Shown: positions 44,490 to 55,700, numbered from the stretch's first letter. The stretch is DNA of 64,000 bases from Guillardia theta CCMP2712 (GCF_000315625.1 NW_005434645.1:45477-109476); one strand, 5' to 3'. Notes: generated by a model not told the origin, from the letters alone. A program made the numbers and translations.

Positions 44490-45180
44490 TCCGAAGCACG
44501 GGAGCCCGCCCGGGGCCCGCCCGGGGCCCGGCCACAGGCTGCCAGCCCGGGCCGCGGGCGGAGGCCGGAGCCTTGTAGTACTACGGTACGCCCGGGGCCG
44601 GCGGCCGCCGCGCGGTACGGTCACTGCCGCGTCCGAGTCATACGGGCAGTCACGGTCGGTGAGGCCCAGCCTAGCCAGGCTAGTAGGTCAGGCCGCTCCG
44701 AGCGACCAGGCCCCGCCCGGGCCGGGCCCGGGCCCCGGCCCGGGGGAGCCTGAACTTCAAGCGGCTTAACGCTCCCGGGCCCGGGCCCGGGGCTACCGTA
44801 CTGTTCAACGGTTATCATCACGCGGCCGCCGCACTGCACCGGGGCCCGGGCCGACAGTCTAGCCCGGCCTGAGCCGCTACTGCGGCCCGGCCGGGGGCCC
44901 TCAGTGACTCAGTGACTATACGCCGGTCGGACGGTCACGGTCCGTACGTCAGGCCTCAGTTCTTTACTCAAAGTTAAGTTAAAGATCAGTACTACGGTAC
45001 GGTACTACGGTGACGGTGCAGTATGCCAGGGCCGCCCGCGGTGCGTCCGATCACCGGGCCCAGTAGTATTCCGCCGGGCGCGACTGAGCCGCCGCGCGGC
45101 ACTGAGTGCCCGGGGCCGGCGGCGGGCGCCCGGCCCGACCGCCGGCTGGCTGGCCGGCTGGCGAGTAGCAGATAGGCGGG
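44490..45180. repeat. Large GC-rich CCCGGG/GGCC island containing the dispersed repeat (44955-44992), in the divergent YeeE/SMCHD1 intergenic region
   Basis: Dense cccggg and gcggccgc sites, modules gtactacggt, cagtgact and cggtcacggt, and ctcagttctttactcaaagttaagttaaagatcagtac. Confidence 0.8.
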
Positions 45181-45265
45181 GGAATGTAAGGGAGGAAGGA
45201 CCCGGTGGTTGTGAGAGCAAAGTTAGGAGATACAAGGGGGTACTCAGATACAAACAGGGCACGCC

Positions 45266-48200
45266 ATGGCGGGTGTGGAGGTTCTGTGTGAAGCCGAGCG
45301 CTATGGCGGAAAGAGGGTGAGCTCGGTGGTGGTACCTCCATCCTCCCTCTCCCCTCCTCATGTCCTCTCCCAGTTCCTCCAAGACGCCCTCGGCCTTCCC
45401 GGTCGGCCGTTGCTGGCACTTGCATCCCTATCAGGAGAGCCCCTCTCGGATCAGGAGGTGCAGACGTCAGTACCCTCGTGCGCGCTGCTGCTCATCGATG
45501 GGAGCGTAGCAGAATTTAGTGTAGAGAGGAAGAGATCGAATGTGCCTGTGAAAGGATTCTTGGATGATCTCGCTACATGCCAGTATACCATCCTGTTGGC
45601 CATGTGCGAGCTGATAGACAACAGCGTGCAATCCACCAAGGGCAACAGTTCGAGCGAAGGCAGGACGATAGATATCGACATTGACGAGATTGATTCCAAG
45701 ACGTTCACAATATTCGACAACGGGATGGGTTTTACACTGGGTGACTCGGCAGACTTTGCTACAATAGGAAAGAAGGGGAGGATGAACAGTGTGGGGGAGG
45801 AGGTCGAACCTGGGACCCAGAAGGTCACATCCTATAGGTCATACTTCACCTCCAACATCTCAAGGTTCGCCTTCATTGACGATCGACATGCAGCTCCTAA
45901 CCTCTGATGCTCGGCAGGTACGGGGTCGGTCTGAAGATGGCGCTACACTTGCTGGGAGCCAAGTACTCCTTGAAGTCGAAGCAGAAGGCGAGCAAGGTTG
46001 TGCTCAGGTGCAGCTTTGACAAGATCGGAGACGATTATGAGTACATCGAAGAGTACGAGCCTTGCGATCCTTCAGAGCAGTCTAGGAGCTACAGCCTGAT
46101 CCAGGTCCAGTTCTTCCGGGAGGGGTTGGCCGCCGCCTGCCAGGCGAATCACCATGACGAGTGGCCCACGATTCTTGCGAGGAATCTGAGGAGCATCTAC
46201 TACTGTTATCTTGACATACCAAACATGCTGCATGAAGAAGGTAACGATCAACCTCACAACGTCTCTGTCTGAGGTCTCTTGTTCCTCGGCAGGAGATGAC
46301 AGAGGGAAGAAGGAACGTGGAACCGGTAACTTAGGTTCAGTCAAGATCGCCAAGATGATTCATCAAAGGCTTGAGAGTAGCACATTCAACAAGAAGAATG
46401 GGCAGAAACGGAAGAGCTCGAATGGGAAACTGACTTATCTTGAACTTGCCTCCGAGAATCTTCGGCAGCAACTGGGGCACTACCTGTCGGCGAGCAAGAA
46501 AGCCAAGAACGAGATCGTCGGTGTGGACTTGAACTTCTCTGTGAGAATTTCCTTTATGCCCAATCACTTTGAGGAGGTGATGATGGTTTTGCAGGTCAAG
46601 AGCTACCAGAAATGCATGATCTCACAAGAACCTTGCTTCTGGGACGAGGTAATCCTGGCATGGACCGAATCTTGAACGATTGCTCGTCTCAGACACATGA
46701 ACACATTTGCACATTTTCGTGTAAATGTCTCTTTGAGCATGCAACAGGTGTTTGGTCCGGGTGCTCAAGATTGCTTCCCCATCTGGTTTGAAGTTGAAAC
46801 TTGCGGGGCTGGAAGATCGATTGTTATGGGAGCGATCTTCTACTATGGAGTGAAGGAAGACTCCACTGGAGAGAATGTTCCGAGGTTGACGAATTGTTGT
46901 GTTGCTAATGTTGAAACTTGTAGGAGCATGGAAAAGTTTGACTTGTATGAGATGATACGTAGCTGATGATACAGTGATTCCATGTAGAATTTGGTGTGGA
47001 AAACTAGATGTTCGCTGTGATTGATCGATATACTCGAACAGGAGAGATTTTCGAGTGGACATGGCACGCAACAGCGTTGAAGCAGACTTTCGTTTTGCTA
47101 CTTTGTGGATGGGAAGATGGCTTCCTAACGAAAACTTCATACCTCCGTTCATGATCTTCGACAATCATCGCTGTTCAAAAGCTCCGTCCCGTTGTTACAA
47201 GAGGGCATTTGGCTTCATGTCACTTGATGTGCAATGTTGATGTGAGTGTGAGTGTGTTGCAGGTTGTTAGACCGTGCGTTCAAACCGCAACAAAACAAGC
47301 AAGCCATCGAGCCGAACGGAGATGTATGGTTGAACCTAAGAAGGGCCATGGGGGATGAAAGAATGTTCTCCCTGTACGACGACTGGCTGTTAGAGTGCCA
47401 CAAGAAGTTTGATTACGAGGTGTTGCCCCTTTGCGCAGTATTCTGTTGGATGAATAAGTTTTGTGCGATCTGTTCGTCGTGTTTGGCTTGTTTCTTGTTC
47501 CACCTGACGTGTGAGATGTGATCGAATCTCTGCAGGTTGTGTTTGACTCAGAAGATGCGGTCATCGTGTACGACGAGCAAAGAGAGCAATCCTGCCACAA
47601 GTCGATCTTGCTGGCAGGAGTCAGAATCAAGGTGCGCGATCAAGACGCGGAGGGGGAGCGAGAGCCGTCGAACTCTAACATCCGCTCGCTCTGCAGGCAG
47701 GTGACAAGGTTCAGTATGCGAGGAAGGGAAAGGATATCTCGAATGGACCGCTGGGAGAGATAGTGGAGTTTTGGCAGGACGGGCATTTCAAGCTGCAAGG
47801 GAAGGAGGGGAGCGTCATGATCCGTGAGATGGAGCAGGGAGAGTGCTTGTCCGATCCACAGGAGCTCCGTCTGAACCAGATTAGCATCAAGAAGGTCACT
47901 ATGACTCGATGGAAGGAGGAGCTGACGAGGATGAGGAGGAGTGTGATCTGCGACATCGTGTGGGAGAACCGGGAGGAGGAGGTGGAAGCAGGAAAGCTCA
48001 TGAAGGATATCTCTATCCTCTGCCTGAATTCCGAAGGAAAGCCTGTCTCTGTGAGCAGGAGCGGCAGGGGCGTCAAGGTTTCCCTCCTCGTGCAGTCTTC
48101 ACACGGCCGGTCGTGGAGGTTTGATGCTGAGACCAAGGATGGGGATGGGAGGACGGAGGGGTCGAGGAGGTTTATCTTCGGCCCCTTGGTCGAAGGGGAG

Positions 48201-51200
48201 GAGAGCATCCTGCAGCGAGCAGGAAAGTTTGACTTCACCTTCTTCCTCCTGAGGGCGAGGAGCAAGGCTGAAGAGACGCTGGAGGAGGTGACCAGCTGTC
48301 GGAACGAGGTGGAGGTGAGGGCTGGAGGCATCAGGTCCATGAGGCTGGTGGAGGAGGAGGTGGAAGGCTCTCGCGTGCAGAGGGGACGTCAAGTCCCAGA
48401 TTTCTCCTTCCTCCTCCTCGATGGATACGGGAACGAGGTACAGGACGCCGCTGCCGAGGGCTGTACCTTCGAGCATGAGCTGCGAGGACCAGAAGAGGAC
48501 GTACGGTCTTGTGACCGGTGCCGCATCCTCTTCGAAGGAGGAAGGCTCGTCGTTGGCAACCTCGTCCTCCACGACAGGGCGTTGGGGAAGTGGAAGCTGG
48601 TGGTGCGGGTGGTGGAGGGAGGGAGGAGGCAGGCGGAGAGCTGCGTGACCCTTGAGCTGATCCATGGGGACCCTCAGGTGATCGAGTTCATCCCCAACCG
48701 GCTGGGTGCGAGCTTGCAATCTTATCAGATGAGGGGGACGCGGGAGGAGAGCACGTGGATGGTGTCGCTGCTCGACGACGCGGGCAACATTTGCTCAACG
48801 TCGCAGGGGAGTGTCGTGCTCGTCAGCTCCTGCCTCGTGAAGCCGGTCAGAGCGCAGGCTGTCAACGGGCATGCGATCTTCAGTGAGCTGGAGCTGGAGC
48901 TGCTTCGAAATCCTCTCTTCTCTGGGGGCGACGGAGGAGCGTCCTCGCAGCAGAGCTCAAAACAGGCGCACAAGAAGAAGAACTCCAAGAAGAATCCCAA
49001 GAAGGACGCCGAGCTCAGCTTGACCTGCTTCCCTGGCCTTGGACTCCTGCTGGGAGGTGAGTGTTTGCTGAAGTTGCGTGTTAGTCTGTTGCTGAGAAGG
49101 TGGCAGATGGGAGAGATTTCTTCTGTGACAACGACATGATCTACTGCAAGACTCCGAGCTCTAACTCGTTCAAGCTTGCCAGACTGTTGGCAACTCGGCA
49201 AGACAAGGGAACCCCCTGCATCAACATCTGCGCGATGGGAGAAGAGGGCGACAGGATGGTGGAGAACAGCGTGGGCGAAGTCTTGGTTCAGTCGAGGGCT
49301 TTCCTCCTCAACAAGAAGTTGCAGGACTCGCTGCCCAGAGACTTCCTGTCTCCGAGCGTCTTCTTCACCTCGGATGAAACCGTCGAGAGCTACCCCAGCA
49401 TCCCTCTCAACGTCTTCTTCCTCCAGCAAGTCGACCCTGCAGCCGAGGCTCGCACTCTGTCACCGGATGCTGTCAAACTTTTCACGAGGGTCTCACTGAA
49501 GATCCTCAACAGCCTCTCTCCTCAGTCCGTCAGGATCGTCAACGGTGACAAGCTCGTCGCCCTCTCTGATGACGTCGTGCTGCTCGTCAAGCCTGGGCAG
49601 CAGCTGGACAAGCTGAAGCTGCAGCTGGTGGACGAGGCCGGGGTGTTGTGTGAGCGGCTCCCTGCAAGCAAGGAGGAGGAGGCTCTGCTCGTGGTGGCAT
49701 GCAGCTGGGGTTCGGATGTCACCGTTAAGCACGAAGAGTACAAGGGCGAGGTCGACCTGCCATGCCTGCAAGCGCCAAGCTCCGAGCACGAGAGCGTCTT
49801 CCACGTCCGATGCTCGCTGGAAGACCGGGAGTTGACAGCTTCCTTCAAGGTGGTGGTCGAGACGGGGGCCCCAGCCCAGCTGAGGGTGCAGCTGGAGGAT
49901 GAGGCGGTGAGGGTGGGAAGGGACTGCTCGCTAAAGTTGACGGTCCTGGATGAGAGAGGAGCGAAGGTGGTGGGGTCAGACGACCAGCAGGTCACCCTCG
50001 ACAAGTTCAACGTGTACGTGACGGACGAGAGCGGGAGGAGCTACCCTGTGCTAGTCAGGAAGGAAAACTATGCTCAGGGCTCGCAGATCTACACTCAGTT
50101 CAAGGAGATGGAGGCCGAGCAGGACGAGGACGGGAGCTTCTGGCTGCGGTGCATTCGGCTGAGGGGCAGGGCAGGGAGGGTCGACGTGCATGTCGAGGCA
50201 GTGGTGGAGCTAGAGGATGGAGAGGACTGCAAGCTCTTCAGCGTCAGGGGAGCCTGCGAGGCCCAGCTCGGGGCGGGCAAGGCAGAGCAGTACATGCTGC
50301 AAGGCTCGAGCTGCGTCAGGAGGGTGTCATCCCAGCTGGTCGGGACTCAGCTGACTCAGCTGGAGGGGGCAGTGATGAGGGGGAAAGCCTTCTGTGCTCT
50401 AGAGCCTCTTATCCTGGAGGTCGTCGACGAGAGCCACAACGTGGTGGCAGAGCACAAGAGCAAGGTTCTGCTCGACTTCAGCTCGTCCTCTCTCAGCCGA
50501 TTCTCAGTGGTGAGCTCCAAGAAACCCTCGGGCCTGTCGAACGACGCTGTCCTGCTGTTCGAGAGGCTCCCTTGCAACAGCTACCAGATCGTCGGACTCA
50601 CCTTCCTCGAGAAGGGCTCTCACTCCGCTGTGATCCGCTCCTCTGGCCTCCCCGACCTCCCCCTCCGTTTCGACGTGGAGCCCGCAAACATCGTGCGGGA
50701 GCTCAGCCTCTCGTTTCCCAGCTCGCCGTTGGGGGTCGGCGAGACGGCGCGAGGGCGCCTAGAGCTCATGACGGAGGACGAGGAGGAGCTTGACTTGGAC
50801 CTTTCGCACGCGATCTCCATCCTCTCCTCGGGGGGCCAGGAGCTCCCAGCTCGGGTGGTCAGCCGTGACGGACAAGCAGTGGAGGTGGAGGTGGAGATGC
50901 CGACGCAGGCAGGGGCCTGCATGCTGTACGCCGTCTACACGGAAGTTCGAGACTCTCTGCAGCCAAGGCCGGCAGATGTCGAGTCCTCTCGGGTACGAGT
51001 AGAGCTCCTGCCCTCCTCCTTCTCGCGGCTTCAGTTCATGGAGGAGGAGGAGCAGAACTCGAGCGTGAAGGCTGCGGAGGACGGCGGCCTCGTCCTGCCC
51101 GACCTTTGCGTCTGCGCTACGGACTCCTTCGGGAACCCTTGCAGGCTGGGAGAGAAAGTCTTGAAAGTAGCAGTGAAGCTGAAGAGCAGAGACGGGCTGG

Positions 51201-52683
51201 TGCTGGAGGGGGCGGGGCAGCTTGAGATATCCGAGCGTCAAAACCCTGTGAGGGTGAGGAACTTGCGTGTAGTCCCGAAGGTGCCCCGGGAGATAGACTT
51301 CTGCGAGTTCAACCTTTGCTTCAGCGTGAAGAGAGACAGGAAGCGAGAGAGGGCGAGCCGCGGCGAGGAGGAGGAGGGGGAGATCGCTCAGATTGTGAAG
51401 ACTTTCACCTACAGTAACGACATCTCCATAGTCGAGAAGATCGAGGAGTGTGAGAGAAGGGAGCAGCTGCTCAAGTCCCGGCAGGCGGCCCTCCACAAGA
51501 GCATCCAGGAGGGACAGGCGAGGATCGCTGCGCGACGTTCGAAGTTCGCAGAGGAGGAGGAGGAGGAGGACGTGGACGTGAGCGAGAAGCTGACGAGCTC
51601 GCGGCAGAAGCTCAAGGGCCTGCTGGAGGACTGGGCAGGGGCCGAGCGCTCGTCCGCCGCTTTGCCCTCCATGCACGACGTCAACGTGGAGGAGCTGGAG
51701 GGGGTGGTCGGGGTGGCCGCGGACCTGGGTGTCATCGACAGGCTGCAGGGGGTCAGCTCGGAGCAGGTGAGCAGGTGCCTGACTGCAGCATTCAAGGGCC
51801 TGCTGTGTGCTGTGCTGTTCCGGAGGGAGGAGGATCTCAACGCCTTCGACGCCCTCCCGCTGGAGGTGAAGGCGCGGGCCAAGGTCAGGAGGGTCTACTG
51901 CAGCACGAGGATGATGGACCCCCCACGGCCGAAGCGTCCTTCCTCCCCGGGCTTCGTCGCCTTCGCCTCCGACATGGTCCAGGTCAGCCCGAGCGTGAGG
52001 GAGGAGGACAGGGGCTGCGCTCGCGTGTTCCTCAACACCATCCTGGCAAACCTCCTGGTCTTCGAGAGCTACGAGCACGCTGTCAAGTACTCCACCGCCA
52101 TGATGCTCCAGAGGAAGCGAGCTGGGCGGCTGGTTGGCCTCGACCGCCCCAACGACGTCATCGACTCGGACGGAGGGAGAAACGTCAACTTCGGAGGGGA
52201 GGAGCTGAGAATTTGCTTCGGGATCCTCCCGCTCCGACCCTCCACCTTGGGGAAGGAGCTGCTGCGAGCCATCGACGAGGGTCGGGCGGTAGTCAAGAAG
52301 CTGGAGGAGGTGGTCGACAGCGATCGGGAAGACAAGCAGTCGATCGAGTGAGAATCGCTCTAGCAACTTCTCTTCCCTGCTTTCCTTCCTCCTCATTCTT
52401 CCACCTACACCGCTCCCTCCTTGCGCTGCTTCTAAGATCTCGTCCTCTCCTCTTCCTCCATCCTGTCCTCCTAATCCAACCCGTCTTGTACAACACCTTT
52501 CCCTAGTGTGTGATCTGCTCCTTGCTATTCTCTTTCCTCTTGTTCTTTCCCGTCCTCTCGTGACTTTCCGTCAGGGCTGACAGGCAGAAGCTGCGGGAGG
52601 TGGACGAGGAGCTGGAGCACAACAGGACAAGCCTCGCCCAGCTCAGCAGCCTCGGGAAGCCCAGGGACGAGGACGTTAGCTGA
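45266..52683 (+). CDS. SMCHD1: SMCHD1/GMI1-like protein: GHKL ATPase + transducer, long beta-rich linker, coiled coil and SMC hinge
   Basis: GHKL motifs AMCELIDNS, IFDNGMG and SNISRYGVGLKMA. SMCHD1-type transducer motifs FATLWMGRWLP, FKPQQNKQ and WLLECHKKFD. Hinge: GVVGVAADLGVI, PGFVAFASDMV, FLNTILANLLVFESYEHAVKY, RLVGLD..VIDSDG. Final exon ends TGA at 52681-52683. Confidence 0.85.
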
Positions 52684-52745
52684 AGTCCAAACTGCAATAG
52701 ACTTGTAAATATTGTTACAAAACACGCTGAGCCCCCGCAAACTGC

Positions 52746-55700
52746 TCAAGCCGAGGAGGCCCTCAGCTGCGGCTCCTTCGCAGGTCGCCTGGCGACCTTG
52801 TTGAGCTGCTTGCGGAAGGCCTCGGGGTCGAGGATGAGGCGCGAACCTGACCAGCTCCCTGTCAGCTTCCCCCCAGCTCGATCCTCTGCTCCTCCTCCCT
52901 TACCGTCCTTGGGCTCCTTGGCGAGCAGCTGCTGGGTGTTGGGGAGCTGCTGGGAGTAGACCTCGCAAGTGATGGCCCTGCGTTGTTCCCCTCCTGTCTT
53001 GACCACGGAGGCCCACACCTGCTGGAGGAGGCGCTTGTCCACGAGCCGAAGAGCCTCCACCTCCTCCTTGTAGCGATCGAAGTTGTACTGGCTGGTAGCG
53101 ATCTCGTCCCAGTGGCCCAGCACCTCGTCCGCGAGCTTCTTGTCCGTCTCCTGCTTCCTCTCGATCAGGCTCGTGACGAACTTTGACACCTGGTCCTCCC
53201 CCAGCTGCTCCAGCTGCTTGTCAAACGAGTCAACGAAGCTGAAGATCCTGCTGGCGATCTCGTTGGCGTCCACCACGCTGGACTGGGTGGTGAAGATGAG
53301 AAACCTTGAGCCGTCTCTCTTCGCTATCCCCGCGTACACGATATACCCCAGCTGCTGATTTGTTCTCAGCTCCGAGTAGAAGGGCTGCTGGACGATGCTA
53401 GCCAGAACCTGCAAGCCGAAGTAAGTGGACGGAGGAGGGAGGAGGGAGGGAGGATAGGGAGGAGAGGGAGGAGAGGGAGGAGTGGGAGGGAGGGAGGGAG
53501 GGAGGGAGGGAGGGAGGGATGGCAGGGTGGGAGGAGGAAGTTGTGCAGGCAGGAAGCAGGAAGTATCGAGAGAGGGAGGTGGGGAGGAGGGGGGGGGAGG
53601 AGGGCAGTAGAGCTCAGACGCCTTCACCTCCATGGCCATCTGCTCCTTGAGGTCGGGGTTGACGTTCTGGAACTGCACGACGACGGCCGAGTTGGGGTTG
53701 TCCGGGTTCAGCTCCTTCCTCCTCAGCAAGTTTCCTCGTCCCTCCCTCACGATCGGGAGCTCAAGGAGGCGAGGGAGGGACCTCTGCTCCTCTGGCACCT
53801 CCTTGAAGGAGAAAATCTCTCGCATCCTCCCTGCCACCGCACGCGCCTCCTCCTCCCTCACGTTCCCTTGGATCAGCAACTGGCTGTAACCCTGCTCCCA
53901 GAGTCTCTTCGTCCACTCCTTGAGCTCCTTGAGCGAGATGCCGTCAAGCTCTCGCTCGACGTCCGTTGGGAGGTAAGCCGGCAGCTCCAGGCAGAGGCGG
54001 GAGAACTCGGCGGCGTGCTGGTAGGGCTGCTGGGTGGTGAAGGCGCGAAGATCGCGGGAGATGAGGTCCTTGTAGCGTGCGAGCTTGTCCTCGCCCTCGG
54101 GCACGTGAGTCTTGATCCTTTCAGCAACCGAGAGGAGGAAGTCGGCGAGCTTGTCGTTGTAGCCCCCGAAGTTCAGCCGGACTCCACGCTGCGTGAAGTC
54201 GCAAGAGTACTGCAGCCCAGCCACCGCAGCATCGTAGCTAAACTCCGTAAGAGCGTCTGCCAGGGAAGCGGTGAGCAGCTTCGTGAGCGCTGAAGTTCGC
54301 GGGGTGGTCCCGGTGCCCAGCAGGGAGTCGAACTGGGAGATGAGCACGTAGGCGACGGCCTTGGGCTTGCCGTACCTCCTGTCCTGCTTGAAGAAGAGCC
54401 TCCAGGTGCTGTCGTCGACGAGGAGGGAAGGGGGTATGGCAGGCTTTGCCAGGTCCTCTACGATGGAACCCTTGATGTCGAAGTTGGAGGGGATGAACGG
54501 GTTTGGCTGCGGCACCGAGACGCCAGCAAGGGGAAGGCGACCCCAGCGGCTCTTGTCCGCCTCCTCGGTGTAGTAGCTCGTGCCATACCAGCGCTCGCGC
54601 ATCTTCGCGTCCTTGGCGAACTCCTGAAGGAGAAAGTGAGGCAAGGAAAAGGAAGGCAGGGAAGCAAAATGAAAGCACAGTGATTGAGGTTGATGAGGTT
54701 GGAAGGATGGCAGAATGAGCAGGAGAACGAGAAAGAGGAGGACAAGGACCTGGACGAGGAGGAAAGAGGAGGAGGAGGAGGAGGAGGAGGAGGAGGAGGG
54801 CGGGACGAGTACGAACCTTCGATGCGTACGTCAGCATGGCAGACTGCGGAGTAAGCGCAGAGAGCAGCTCCTGGGCCAGGTCGAGCTGGAGGTCACGGGC
54901 GAGGGCAGGGCCGGAGAGGTAGAGACGGGGGTCCTTGAAGGCCTGCATGGAGCTGACAACCCCGACGAACCGGTCCGGTTCCTCCGTCTCCTTGAAGCGC
55001 CAGAAGACCTGAGACAAATCCTCTACCTCCCTGAGGACGTAGGAGGGAATACCCTCCCTCCTGACCAGGTCGAGGTAGCTGAAGATGGAGGCTACAACCT
55101 CGTCCCTCCTCTTGAACCCCTCGATGGTCAGCTCCACGCTCACCACGAAGGACTGGAAGTCCGCCACGCTGTCGGCGACTCCTGCGAAGATGGAGGAGAC
55201 GAGGCCCTTCTCCGTCTTGAGGTAGGAGAGGAGCGAGTTCTTCCCCTCGTAGCCCAGGATCGAGCCGATCACTCGGTCGGGCTTCGACTTCATCCTCCGC
55301 TCCTTATCCTCCTTGGACTTGTAGGGGATCTGCCAGGTGAGCAGGAGCGACCTGCGGGAGGAGGAGGAGAGTGAGTTTGAGTTGATAACAGCACCTGCTA
55401 AGTAGTACAGAGACAGGCACAGAAACGGTATCAACAATATCAAGGCTGACAGCATTTTCTCTCCAACTCACTTTGTACCCCGCGGGTTCACAAAACTGTA
55501 CACAGCATGAAACAAACAGGACAAGGTAAGAATCACACTCCTCCTCCTCCTCCGCCTCCTCCTCCTCCTCTTCCTCTTCCTCCTCCTCCGCTCACCTCTC
55601 ATCCTGTATTGGGACAACATTGTAGACAACATTGCTCGCCTCCCTGCTATACGGCAGGATCTTCCCTGCCCAGCTCTCCTCCGGGGGCTTGACGTCCTTG

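Follow-up and report, generated by a model that had tools for sequence, protein, structure and literature searches.

A predicted SMCHD1/GMI1-type ATPase with an SMC hinge in the unicellular alga Guillardia theta

Results and Discussion

Gene model

The stretch of DNA analysed here, from the cryptophyte alga Guillardia theta CCMP2712, covers 64,000 nucleotides (GCF_000315625.1 NW_005434645.1:45477-109476, C29:45477-109476 in the 87.1 Mb assembly of 669 contigs that was searched) and is called the window in the following, with all positions counted from its first letter. At 45266-52683 on the + strand, corresponding to C29:90742-98159, it carries a gene for a predicted protein that resembles the chromatin ATPase SMCHD1 of animals and its plant relative GMI1. 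Such a gene had been proposed in a reading of the sequence alone, and the start and end given there coincide exactly with the ATG (45266) and the end of the stop codon (52683) of the ten-exon model described below. When the motif coordinates were read directly, every motif quoted in that sequence-only reading was found on the + strand.

Three-frame translation of window 45000-53000 (+) resulted in a chain of open pieces with the frame shifting from piece to piece, as expected for a gene with introns. Junctions were placed at GT-AG sites that keep the frame and by the match to orthologous proteins, which gave 10 exons with a total of 6,513 nt (2,170 codons and the stop). No internal stop in phase is present in any of the 10 exons and all nine introns are of the GT-AG type, with lengths of 53, 94, 99, 157, 44, 116, 65, 50 and 227 nt. 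The exons were searched one by one, and the two environmental orthologues P0055 and P0067 served as full-length proxies for the joined product. Most of the junctions (marked by a slash) match these orthologues residue for residue, as seen for GENVPR/RDFRVDM and EETIPRREVRVDM, AFGFM/LLDRAF and AFGFMFLDRTF, KKFDYE/VVFDSED and KRYDHEVLFDTER, and GVRIK/AGDKVQYARKG and GTRFKVGDKVKIARKG, where the window is named first and the orthologue second in each pair. The exons and the parts of the protein encoded by them are as follows.

45266-45864 (+), exon 1: start codon, UBL-like (ubiquitin-like) N-terminal region at about 45266-45550, first half of the GHKL ATPase
45918-46240 (+), exon 2: second half of the GHKL ATPase
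46335-46648 (+), exon 3: low-complexity linker from the GHKL core to the transducer, open in phase, aligns to P0055
46748-46884 (+), exon 4: S5 transducer, together with exons 5 and 6
47042-47218 (+), exon 5: S5 transducer, together with exons 4 and 6
47263-47419 (+), exon 6: S5 transducer, together with exons 4 and 5
47536-47631 (+), exon 7: short conserved segment past the transducer, VVFDSEDAVIVYDEQ...LLAGVRIK, 54% identity to P0055 and P0067
47697-49056 (+), exon 8: first part of the middle region, 29-33% identity to the orthologues over 330-510 amino acids
49107-51415 (+), exon 9, first part: remaining middle region, 72% identity to Hanusia phi P0001 and 34% to environmental orthologues
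51419-51652 (+), exon 9: predicted N-terminal coiled-coil arm before the hinge, AlphaFold2 (AF2) helices 2-48 and 55-79 with high pLDDT (predicted local distance difference test)
51671-52225 (+), exon 9: predicted globular core of the SMC hinge, from AF2, Foldseek and VIA-align
52244-52347 (+), exon 9: predicted start of the C-terminal coiled-coil arm, AF2 helix of residues 277-310
52575-52683 (+), exon 10: remainder of the C-terminal coiled-coil arm (ADRQKLREVDEELEHNRTSLAQLSS...), stop codon at 52681-52683

Exon 9 as a whole spans 49107-52347, and the in-frame TGA that follows it falls within the donor GTGAGA of intron 9 (52348-52574, 227 nt, GT-AG), across which the frame is kept. The tail encoded by exon 10 shows a weak similarity to that of P0067 (E 0.03), and its 35 residues would bring the returning helix to approximately the length of the outgoing arm. 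An annotated G. theta protein for this locus did not turn up in the searches run.

ATPase and transducer

The GHKL ATPase had been described as intact with a catalytic Glu, and this could be confirmed. Motif I, CELIDNS, with the catalytic Glu and Asn is located at 45605-45625 and motif II, DNGMG, at 45716-45730, both in exon 1, and motif III, (S)RYGVGLK, is restored across the 53-nt intron 45865-45917 with YGVGLK at 45919-45936. Pfam HATPase_c_3 matches both halves, with 19.6 bits for exon piece 1 (profile 2-62) and 20.1 bits for piece 2 (profile 70-115), and neither score reaches the cut-off of 25, as the domain is interrupted inside motif III by the 53-nt intron. Exon 1 is collinear with residues 35-241 of P0067 (37% identity) and exon 2 matches its residues 235-340 with 49% identity.

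The transducer motifs LWMGRWLP (47103-47126), QNKQ with the switch lysine (47291-47302) and WLLECHKKFD (47384-47413) are distributed over exons 5 and 6. Their human counterparts, which the sequence-only reading had given as FWNGRLIP, TNKL and WLKDCHEKYD, are indeed present in the human SMCHD1 structure 6mw7 and align to the motifs of the orthologue. The domain itself is spread over exons 4-6, and on exon piece 5 alone Pfam SMCHD1_S5 (PF22899) gave 13.3 bits, which is under the cut-off. Residues 170-315 of P0055, corresponding to exons 4-6, reach 38.8 bits versus a cut-off of 27; these exons are 50-67% identical to P0055 and P0067, and PF22899 was present in 10 of the 12 family members examined. 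Catalysis by human SMCHD1 requires E147 and N151 of motif I, D184 in DNGxG, motif III and K525 of the transducer (PMC6620310). Aligned via the orthologue and the family profile, CELIDNS, DNGMG, RYGVGLK and QNKQ of the window gene occupy these positions, with the Lys of QNKQ at K525.

When exon pieces 1, 2 and 9 were compared with PDB sequences by phmmer, nothing relevant was found. With P0067 as query the sole PDB match was the ATPase module of human SMCHD1 (6mw7, E 6e-7) in two stretches, GHKL and transducer. A family profile made from window exon 1, its orthologues and its paralogues matched 6mw7 with E 1.2e-17, followed by MORC3 with 0.066 and HtpG/Hsp83 with 0.13-0.25. A grouping of the ATPase with SMCHD1 is thereby supported, and not one with MORC, MutL or Hsp90, the grouping that the earlier reading had named as its refutation, since MORC3 and Hsp90/HtpG (0.13 or weaker) lie far behind.

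A segment common to the orthologues is encoded past the transducer at window 47536-47900, by exon 7 and the beginning of exon 8: ...LLAGVRIK/AGDKVQYARKG...GEIVEFWQDGH. The paralogues show a similar form, GD.V....G.I..FLQD.H. The segment is reminiscent of how a BAH or SH3-like barrel starts, and a weak BAH-like region near the ATPase has been ascribed to SMCHD1. Pfam BAH did not detect the conserved GDKV...FWQDGH segment.

SMC hinge

Searching the 10 open exon pieces and sub-ranges of the hinge with Pfam SMC_hinge (PF06470) gave no match even at E 10, so that of the HMMER check proposed earlier the ATPase half yielded matches, although sub-threshold, and the hinge half none. Hinge profiles searched against the PDB found hinges at non-significant values only (5h69 with E 0.05, 6n64 with E 0.32). 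The C-terminal 200 amino acids of the window gene are 28% identical to the hinge open reading frame (ORF) of a paralogue (E 3e-8), with LG..A.L..ID, VGLD.PN and glycines conserved; VGLDRPN at 52133-52153 and the glycine-rich DSDGGRNVNFGG at 52163-52198 are both part of the hinge core. The hinge ORFs of the paralogues show borderline SMC_hinge scores of 17-24 bits.

As the sequence evidence was weak, the structure encoded by window 51416-52348 was predicted with AF2 from an alignment of 26 sequences. The model has a pLDDT of 94.9 and a pTM (predicted template modelling score) of 0.83; in it an alpha/beta core is preceded by two long helices at the N-terminus and followed by a long one at the C-terminus. 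Its top Foldseek matches in the PDB are all SMC hinges or DMS3, namely Geobacillus Smc, Arabidopsis DMS3, yeast condensin and Thermotoga SMC, with E down to 4e-9. In VIA-align it superposes on cohesin and Thermotoga hinges with Z 15.0-14.2 (root mean square deviation (rmsd) 2.4-2.6 A over 151-157 residues), on DMS3 with Z 13.8 and on the mouse SMCHD1 hinge 6n64 with Z 9.8 (rmsd 4.0 A over 147 residues), the last being the comparison with SMCHD1 that had been suggested. According to the model the C-terminus is an SMC hinge between antiparallel coiled-coil helices, as first read from the sequence, with about 75 residues of coiled coil flanking the hinge. Judged by this prediction a bona fide SMC hinge can escape Pfam SMC_hinge, and as real hinges are overlooked in this way the range of the SMCHD1 family is probably under-counted.

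N-terminus, linkers and middle region

About 95 residues precede motif I, and for these a small UBL-like domain had been put forward as a possibility. The alignment of the family profile covers positions 38-90 of the 6mw7 chain and thus starts inside its UBL, which in human SMCHD1 comprises residues 25-109. AF2 modelled exon 1 poorly (pLDDT 52), yet with the order beta-beta-alpha-beta-beta, which is beta-grasp-like, and in Foldseek all matches of this model were weak (E 0.02 or weaker) and nearly all to UBL, SUMO, ISG15 or PB1. An N-terminal UBL is therefore supported by the profile alignment and a low-confidence model, but not proven.

Two basic patches are found, QKRKSS in exon 3 (46403-46420), which is conserved as RKRK in the orthologues, and KKKNSKKNPKK in exon 8 (48972-49004), and an N-terminal hydrophobic signal is absent from the gene product. 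QKRKSS could be a nuclear localisation signal, and both patches together with the missing hydrophobic signal would fit a nuclear protein.

The middle region, from exon 8 to 51415, comprises approximately 1,250 amino acids between transducer and coiled coil and is not a coiled coil itself. For the SMCHD1 linker, too, beta-sheet and disorder have been predicted, in contrast to SMC proteins with their helical arms (PMC7458401). The beta-rich repeats proposed for this region were found in part: an L.V.D..GN-like motif recurs seven times with a spacing of about 105 to 270 amino acids, mostly 105-160. Copies in exon 8 are FSFLLLDGYGN (48402-48434) and VSLLDDAGN (48762-48788), and in exon 9 motifs of this type start at 49619, 49937, 50414 and 51110, with LQLVDEAG at 49619-49642, LEVVDESHN at 50414-50440 and ATDSFGN at 51116-51136 (+). 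When four segments of the middle region, each centred on a motif, were compared with one another in hhalign, no significant repeat homology was seen (probability <= 37%), therefore we do not call the motifs repeats in a strict sense. The ESM Atlas gave leads below 0.9 only, to clusters of Ig_SMCHD1_6th, invasin and filamin. As a lead, the first part of exon 9 probably forms Ig-like beta-sandwich domains.

Orthologues

A word search with exon 9 identified one protein, P0001 from Hanusia phi (EukProt), which has 1,088 amino acids, is 72% identical and is co-extensive with exon 9 as an open frame. An exhaustive profile search gave 19 proteins, all of them except that from Hanusia originating from environmental assemblies; a fragment from Rhodomonas salina is part of one orthologue cluster (24% identity over 319 amino acids). 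P0055, taken from these clusters, has 2,073 amino acids and is cut at the N-terminus. P0067, identified by another word search and with 2,454 amino acids, stands for 36 sequences including single ORFs of 2,449-2,454 amino acids on contigs of up to 37 kb, and its residues 35-2387 are collinear with window 45275-52348 via exons 1, 2, 4, 5, 6, 7, 8 and 9. In these orthologues ATPase, transducer, middle region and hinge are encoded in one uninterrupted ORF. Comparison with them and the frame-consistent GT-AG model thus indicate that ATPase and hinge of the window gene are on one polypeptide as well.

The 90%-identity cluster of P0067 also includes the NCBI entries MGB1600409.1, MGB1600410.1 and MGB1599601.1 from contigs of about 1.4 kb, which are labelled 'MAG: ... 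[Promethearchaeia archaeon]' (MAG, metagenome-assembled genome). They look like eukaryotic DNA mis-binned into the MAG of an Asgard archaeon.

Paralogues in the G. theta genome

In a whole-genome search with PF06470 and PF22899 the window locus was not listed and paralogues surfaced instead. Using PF22899 and a paralogue as queries, at least 8 further SMCHD1-like genes were identified in the G. theta genome.

C54:85236-91600, paralogue locus (query copy)
C41:568000-574056, paralogue locus
C62:41000-47003, paralogue locus
C62:62045-68100, paralogue locus
C62:99084-103601, paralogue locus
C231:41900-47926, paralogue locus
C52:36400-42498, paralogue locus
C38:74400-80381, paralogue locus

They encode a GHKL domain, SMCHD1_S5 (50-62 bits), a long middle region and a weakly scoring SMC hinge, and are 30-43% identical to the query copy on C54. 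Mostly they consist of one ORF of 1,550-1,600 amino acids and a hinge ORF of about 480-560 amino acids, and a conserved intron directly precedes a GPVEQL motif; for the copy at C62:99084 no hinge ORF of at least 250 amino acids was present within the stretch fetched. Most of them start straight at the GHKL domain without the UBL-like extension. Full-length Hanusia transcripts of genes from the paralogue clade encode 1,892-1,944 amino acids. UniRef names the G. theta paralogues after the SMCHD1 S5 domain and NCBI as GUITHDRAFT_....

A tree was reconstructed from the region equivalent to exon 9 (unrooted, quick search, with P0012 on a long branch). It separates two clades, each with 100% SH-aLRT (Shimodaira-Hasegawa-like approximate likelihood ratio test) support: the window gene groups with Hanusia P0001 and environmental sequences, and the paralogues make up the other clade, inside which pairs of G. 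theta and Hanusia genes are found. Two of the paralogues, L022:2391-7028 (-) = C62:42390-47027 and L025:1019-5701 (+) = C62:62018-66700, are inverted to each other about 15 kb apart and their proteins are 90% identical, with the differences being patchy and not evenly spread. They seem to have been duplicated recently, and gene conversion or fast local evolution may have contributed.

Morc6_S5 was detected at three other loci (C83:29945-30382, C196:70406-70747 and C11:384575-384754; 33-58 bits). G. theta thus possesses classical MORCs besides its nine SMCHD1-like genes, and as the MORC-type S5 is located at other loci the two families are distinct from each other in its genome.

Three weak SMC_hinge matches (about 22-24 bits) with similar open frames of about 367 amino acids lie within 25 kb at C20:302488-327151, unrelated to the SMCHD1_S5 loci. 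They could represent a small tandem family of hinge-like proteins. In the window itself a convergent gene at 52749-54644 (-) ends about 65 nt past the stop codon of the SMCHD1-like gene; with Peptidase_M16_M (E 1e-46), PqqF-like_C_4 and Peptidase_M16_C it probably encodes part of an insulin-degrading-enzyme-type peptidase.

Interpretation

We give a probability of roughly 80% to the reading that the window gene is an intact nuclear gene of G. theta for an SMCHD1/GMI1 family protein of about 2,170 amino acids, which belongs to a putatively UBL-bearing subfamily and would act as an ATP-gated chromatin clamp. The SMCHD1/GMI1-type architecture seen already in the sequence-only reading is borne out by the ATPase profile, the SMCHD1_S5 score of P0055 (38.8 bits) and the hinge fold. 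By its sequence relationships the gene appears to be the G. theta representative of a subfamily common to Hanusia, Rhodomonas and environmental eukaryotes and distinct from the paralogue clade.

By analogy with SMCHD1 (PMC4628070, PMC6620310, PMC7458401) two chains would be permanently joined through the hinge, while the N-terminal UBL-GHKL-S5 heads would dimerise on ATP binding and separate on hydrolysis. A hinge homodimer with such ATP-dependent head dimerisation would make an ATP-gated clamp or bridge on nuclear chromatin, where the hinge may contact nucleic acid.

Several points weigh against this interpretation. All Pfam matches of the window gene itself are under the cut-off and SMC_hinge gave none, so membership in the family rests on exon-wise homology, on the orthologues and on predicted structure. 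The evidence for the UBL is weak (AF2 pLDDT 52), and the least certain parts of the gene model are the acceptor of intron 2 (46334; alternative 46292) and the coding status of exon 10. For G. theta the single transcript is deduced from comparison and the gene model, and the only transcript-derived relative of the window gene, Hanusia P0001, spans exon 9 alone. The Met with which P0001 starts corresponds in position to G. theta intron 8, and the peptide ends at the exon 9 donor (window 49085-52351 compared); these borders could mean a separate C-terminal transcript and not unspliced RNA. Two transcription units would then be present: exons 1-8 would encode UBL-GHKL-S5 with the first part of the middle region, and exon 9 would be a separate gene or internal-promoter transcript for a DMS3-like hinge protein working with a separate ATPase, much as the hinge-only DMS3 of plants acts with a separate MORC ATPase (PMC5651269). 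We consider such a split improbable, since at the place where the Hanusia peptide starts an ATG is missing from G. theta (the first in-frame ATG is at 49136), yet the residues before that ATG are conserved (GRDFFCDND versus GKDFFCVNE in Hanusia) and are coding only if spliced to exon 8. This splice preserves the frame, using the acceptor at 49106 and the donor at 49057, which is a perfect GTGAGT. Furthermore, the Hanusia stop is the TGA in the conserved donor GA/GTGAG, as unspliced RNA would give, P0055 and P0067 each cross both junctions within a single ORF, and the Hanusia paralogues are full-length single proteins. The stop in the donor, the conservation ahead of the first G. theta ATG and the orthologues crossing both junctions suggest that P0001 is an ORF called on unspliced or intron-retaining RNA.

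For the intact SMCHD1-type protein that we favour, a main role in double-strand-break repair or homologous recombination, as reported for Arabidopsis GMI1, is quite conceivable even if it is not our first choice: a unicellular alga has no X inactivation or imprinting, and genome maintenance may be the ancestral function. The sequence does not separate repair from silencing, but the large paralogue expansion would be more typical of genome defence or silencing than of core repair factors, and we lean slightly towards compaction or silencing of repeated DNA. Very improbable, in our view, is that the gene is a paralogue which is degenerating or no longer functional, left over in divergent form from the SMCHD1-like expansion. 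Among the nine loci it has diverged most, with sub-threshold Pfam scores and a hinge not recognised by sequence, but across 6.5 kb of spliced coding sequence it has neither stop nor frameshift, every catalytic residue is retained, the identity with Hanusia is 72% over 1,088 amino acids, and orthologues exist in Rhodomonas and many environmental assemblies; the low Pfam scores are accounted for by introns that split the domains. We give equally little credit to a MORC-type or generic GHKL protein that gained its hinge independently, outside the SMCHD1/GMI1 lineage. The hinge model is indeed closer to bacterial and cohesin hinges (Z 14-15) than to that of SMCHD1 (Z 9.8), and the profile match to 6n64 is non-significant (E 0.32). 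However, ATPase and transducer are SMCHD1-specific (E 1e-17 versus 0.07 for MORC3; PF22899 and no Morc6_S5), domain order and non-helical linker are those of SMCHD1 (PMC7458401), and the hinge of SMCHD1 has itself been reported to be closest to prokaryotic SMC hinges (PMC4628070).

More speculatively, and rather doubtful at present, cryptophytes might keep two old SMCHD1 subfamilies with divided labour, a UBL-bearing core retaining the ancestral role of a chromatin clamp and an expanded, fast-diversifying, mostly UBL-less clade used in genome defence or conflict. The core type would be that of the window gene, found also in Rhodomonas and in environmental eukaryotes, where it is intronless, and the expanded clade has at least 8 genes, including recent tandem or inverted duplicates. 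If this division were true, what SMCHD1 did ancestrally could be studied in G. theta as a tractable unicellular model.

Significance

SMCHD1 is of medical importance (facioscapulohumeral dystrophy type 2 and arhinia), and half of the protein is uncharacterised. To our knowledge mammals and a single plant study account for all functional work on the family. Phylogenetic depth is gained from a complete homologue whose catalytic residues are intact, in a unicellular alga that can be cultivated, and likewise from the intronless environmental orthologues; together they help to define the conserved parts, namely the putative UBL, the transducer motifs, the hinge fold and the non-helical linker. The window gene also shows how the hinge fold, as predicted, persists in a sequence that is no longer recognisable.

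An ancient origin or patchy retention of the family had been proposed; this is right but not novel, as GHKL, S5 and hinge were described as an ancient eukaryotic lineage by Iyer et al. 2008. Full-text literature searches found no paper on SMCHD1 in Guillardia or algae. We regard as mildly new the putatively UBL-bearing subfamily with intronless environmental orthologues, the family of nine genes in one alga and the hinge that escapes Pfam; the find is otherwise confirmatory, because the antiquity was proposed in 2008 and databases label the G. theta paralogues SMCHD1_S5.

Comparison with known systems

Animal SMCHD1 (6mw7 for the ATPase, 6n64 for the hinge) shows the same order of UBL-like domain (putative in the window gene), GHKL, S5, long non-helical linker, coiled coil, SMC hinge and coiled coil, and with 2,005 amino acids it is similar in length to the 2,170 amino acids of the G. 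theta protein. Both share the catalytic Glu and Asn, DNGxG, motif III and the switch Lys, and LWMGRWLP, QNKQ and WLLECHKKFD of the window gene correspond to FWNGRLIP, TNKL and WLKDCHEKYD. They differ in that the identity is very low, with a single sequence reaching 6mw7 only via P0067 (E 6e-7), and in that the hinge model of the window gene, unrecognisable by sequence, is nearer to canonical SMC hinges (Z 15) than to 6n64 (Z 9.8). The window gene also has a low-complexity insert with an RKRK-like patch between GHKL and transducer, and the context of LRIF1/HP1 or X inactivation is inapplicable to a unicellular alga.

GMI1 of Arabidopsis is shorter, with about 1,600 amino acids. Compared by its description (PMC5651269), it likewise combines a GHKL ATPase with a C-terminal SMC hinge in a photosynthetic eukaryote. 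The G. theta paralogues, such as GUITHDRAFT_141368, _121490 and _141135, are collinear with the window gene exon by exon, but at about 25-30% identity, with one or two introns versus nine, mostly without UBL and in a separate clade.

MORC ATPases (MORC1-4 and plant MORCs) belong to the same GHKL and S5 superfamily and show ATP-dependent N-terminal dimerisation. They have no hinge, whereas one is predicted for the window gene, and their S5 is a different Pfam family (Morc6_S5, PF17942), which gave no match in the window gene, its orthologues or its paralogues. Canonical SMC proteins (SMC1-6, Smc/MukB) have a split Walker A/B ABC head and long antiparallel coiled-coil arms, in contrast to the GHKL head and the approximately 75 coiled-coil residues by the hinge in the window gene, and no SMC_N or ABC head domain was found in any of its exon pieces. 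Arabidopsis DMS3 of the DDR complex (6ois, 6oit) is, with its hinge and flanking coiled coils, among the best structural matches (Foldseek E 4e-9, Z 13.8). DMS3 is without an ATPase of its own, whereas in the window gene the ATPase is part of the same predicted polypeptide.

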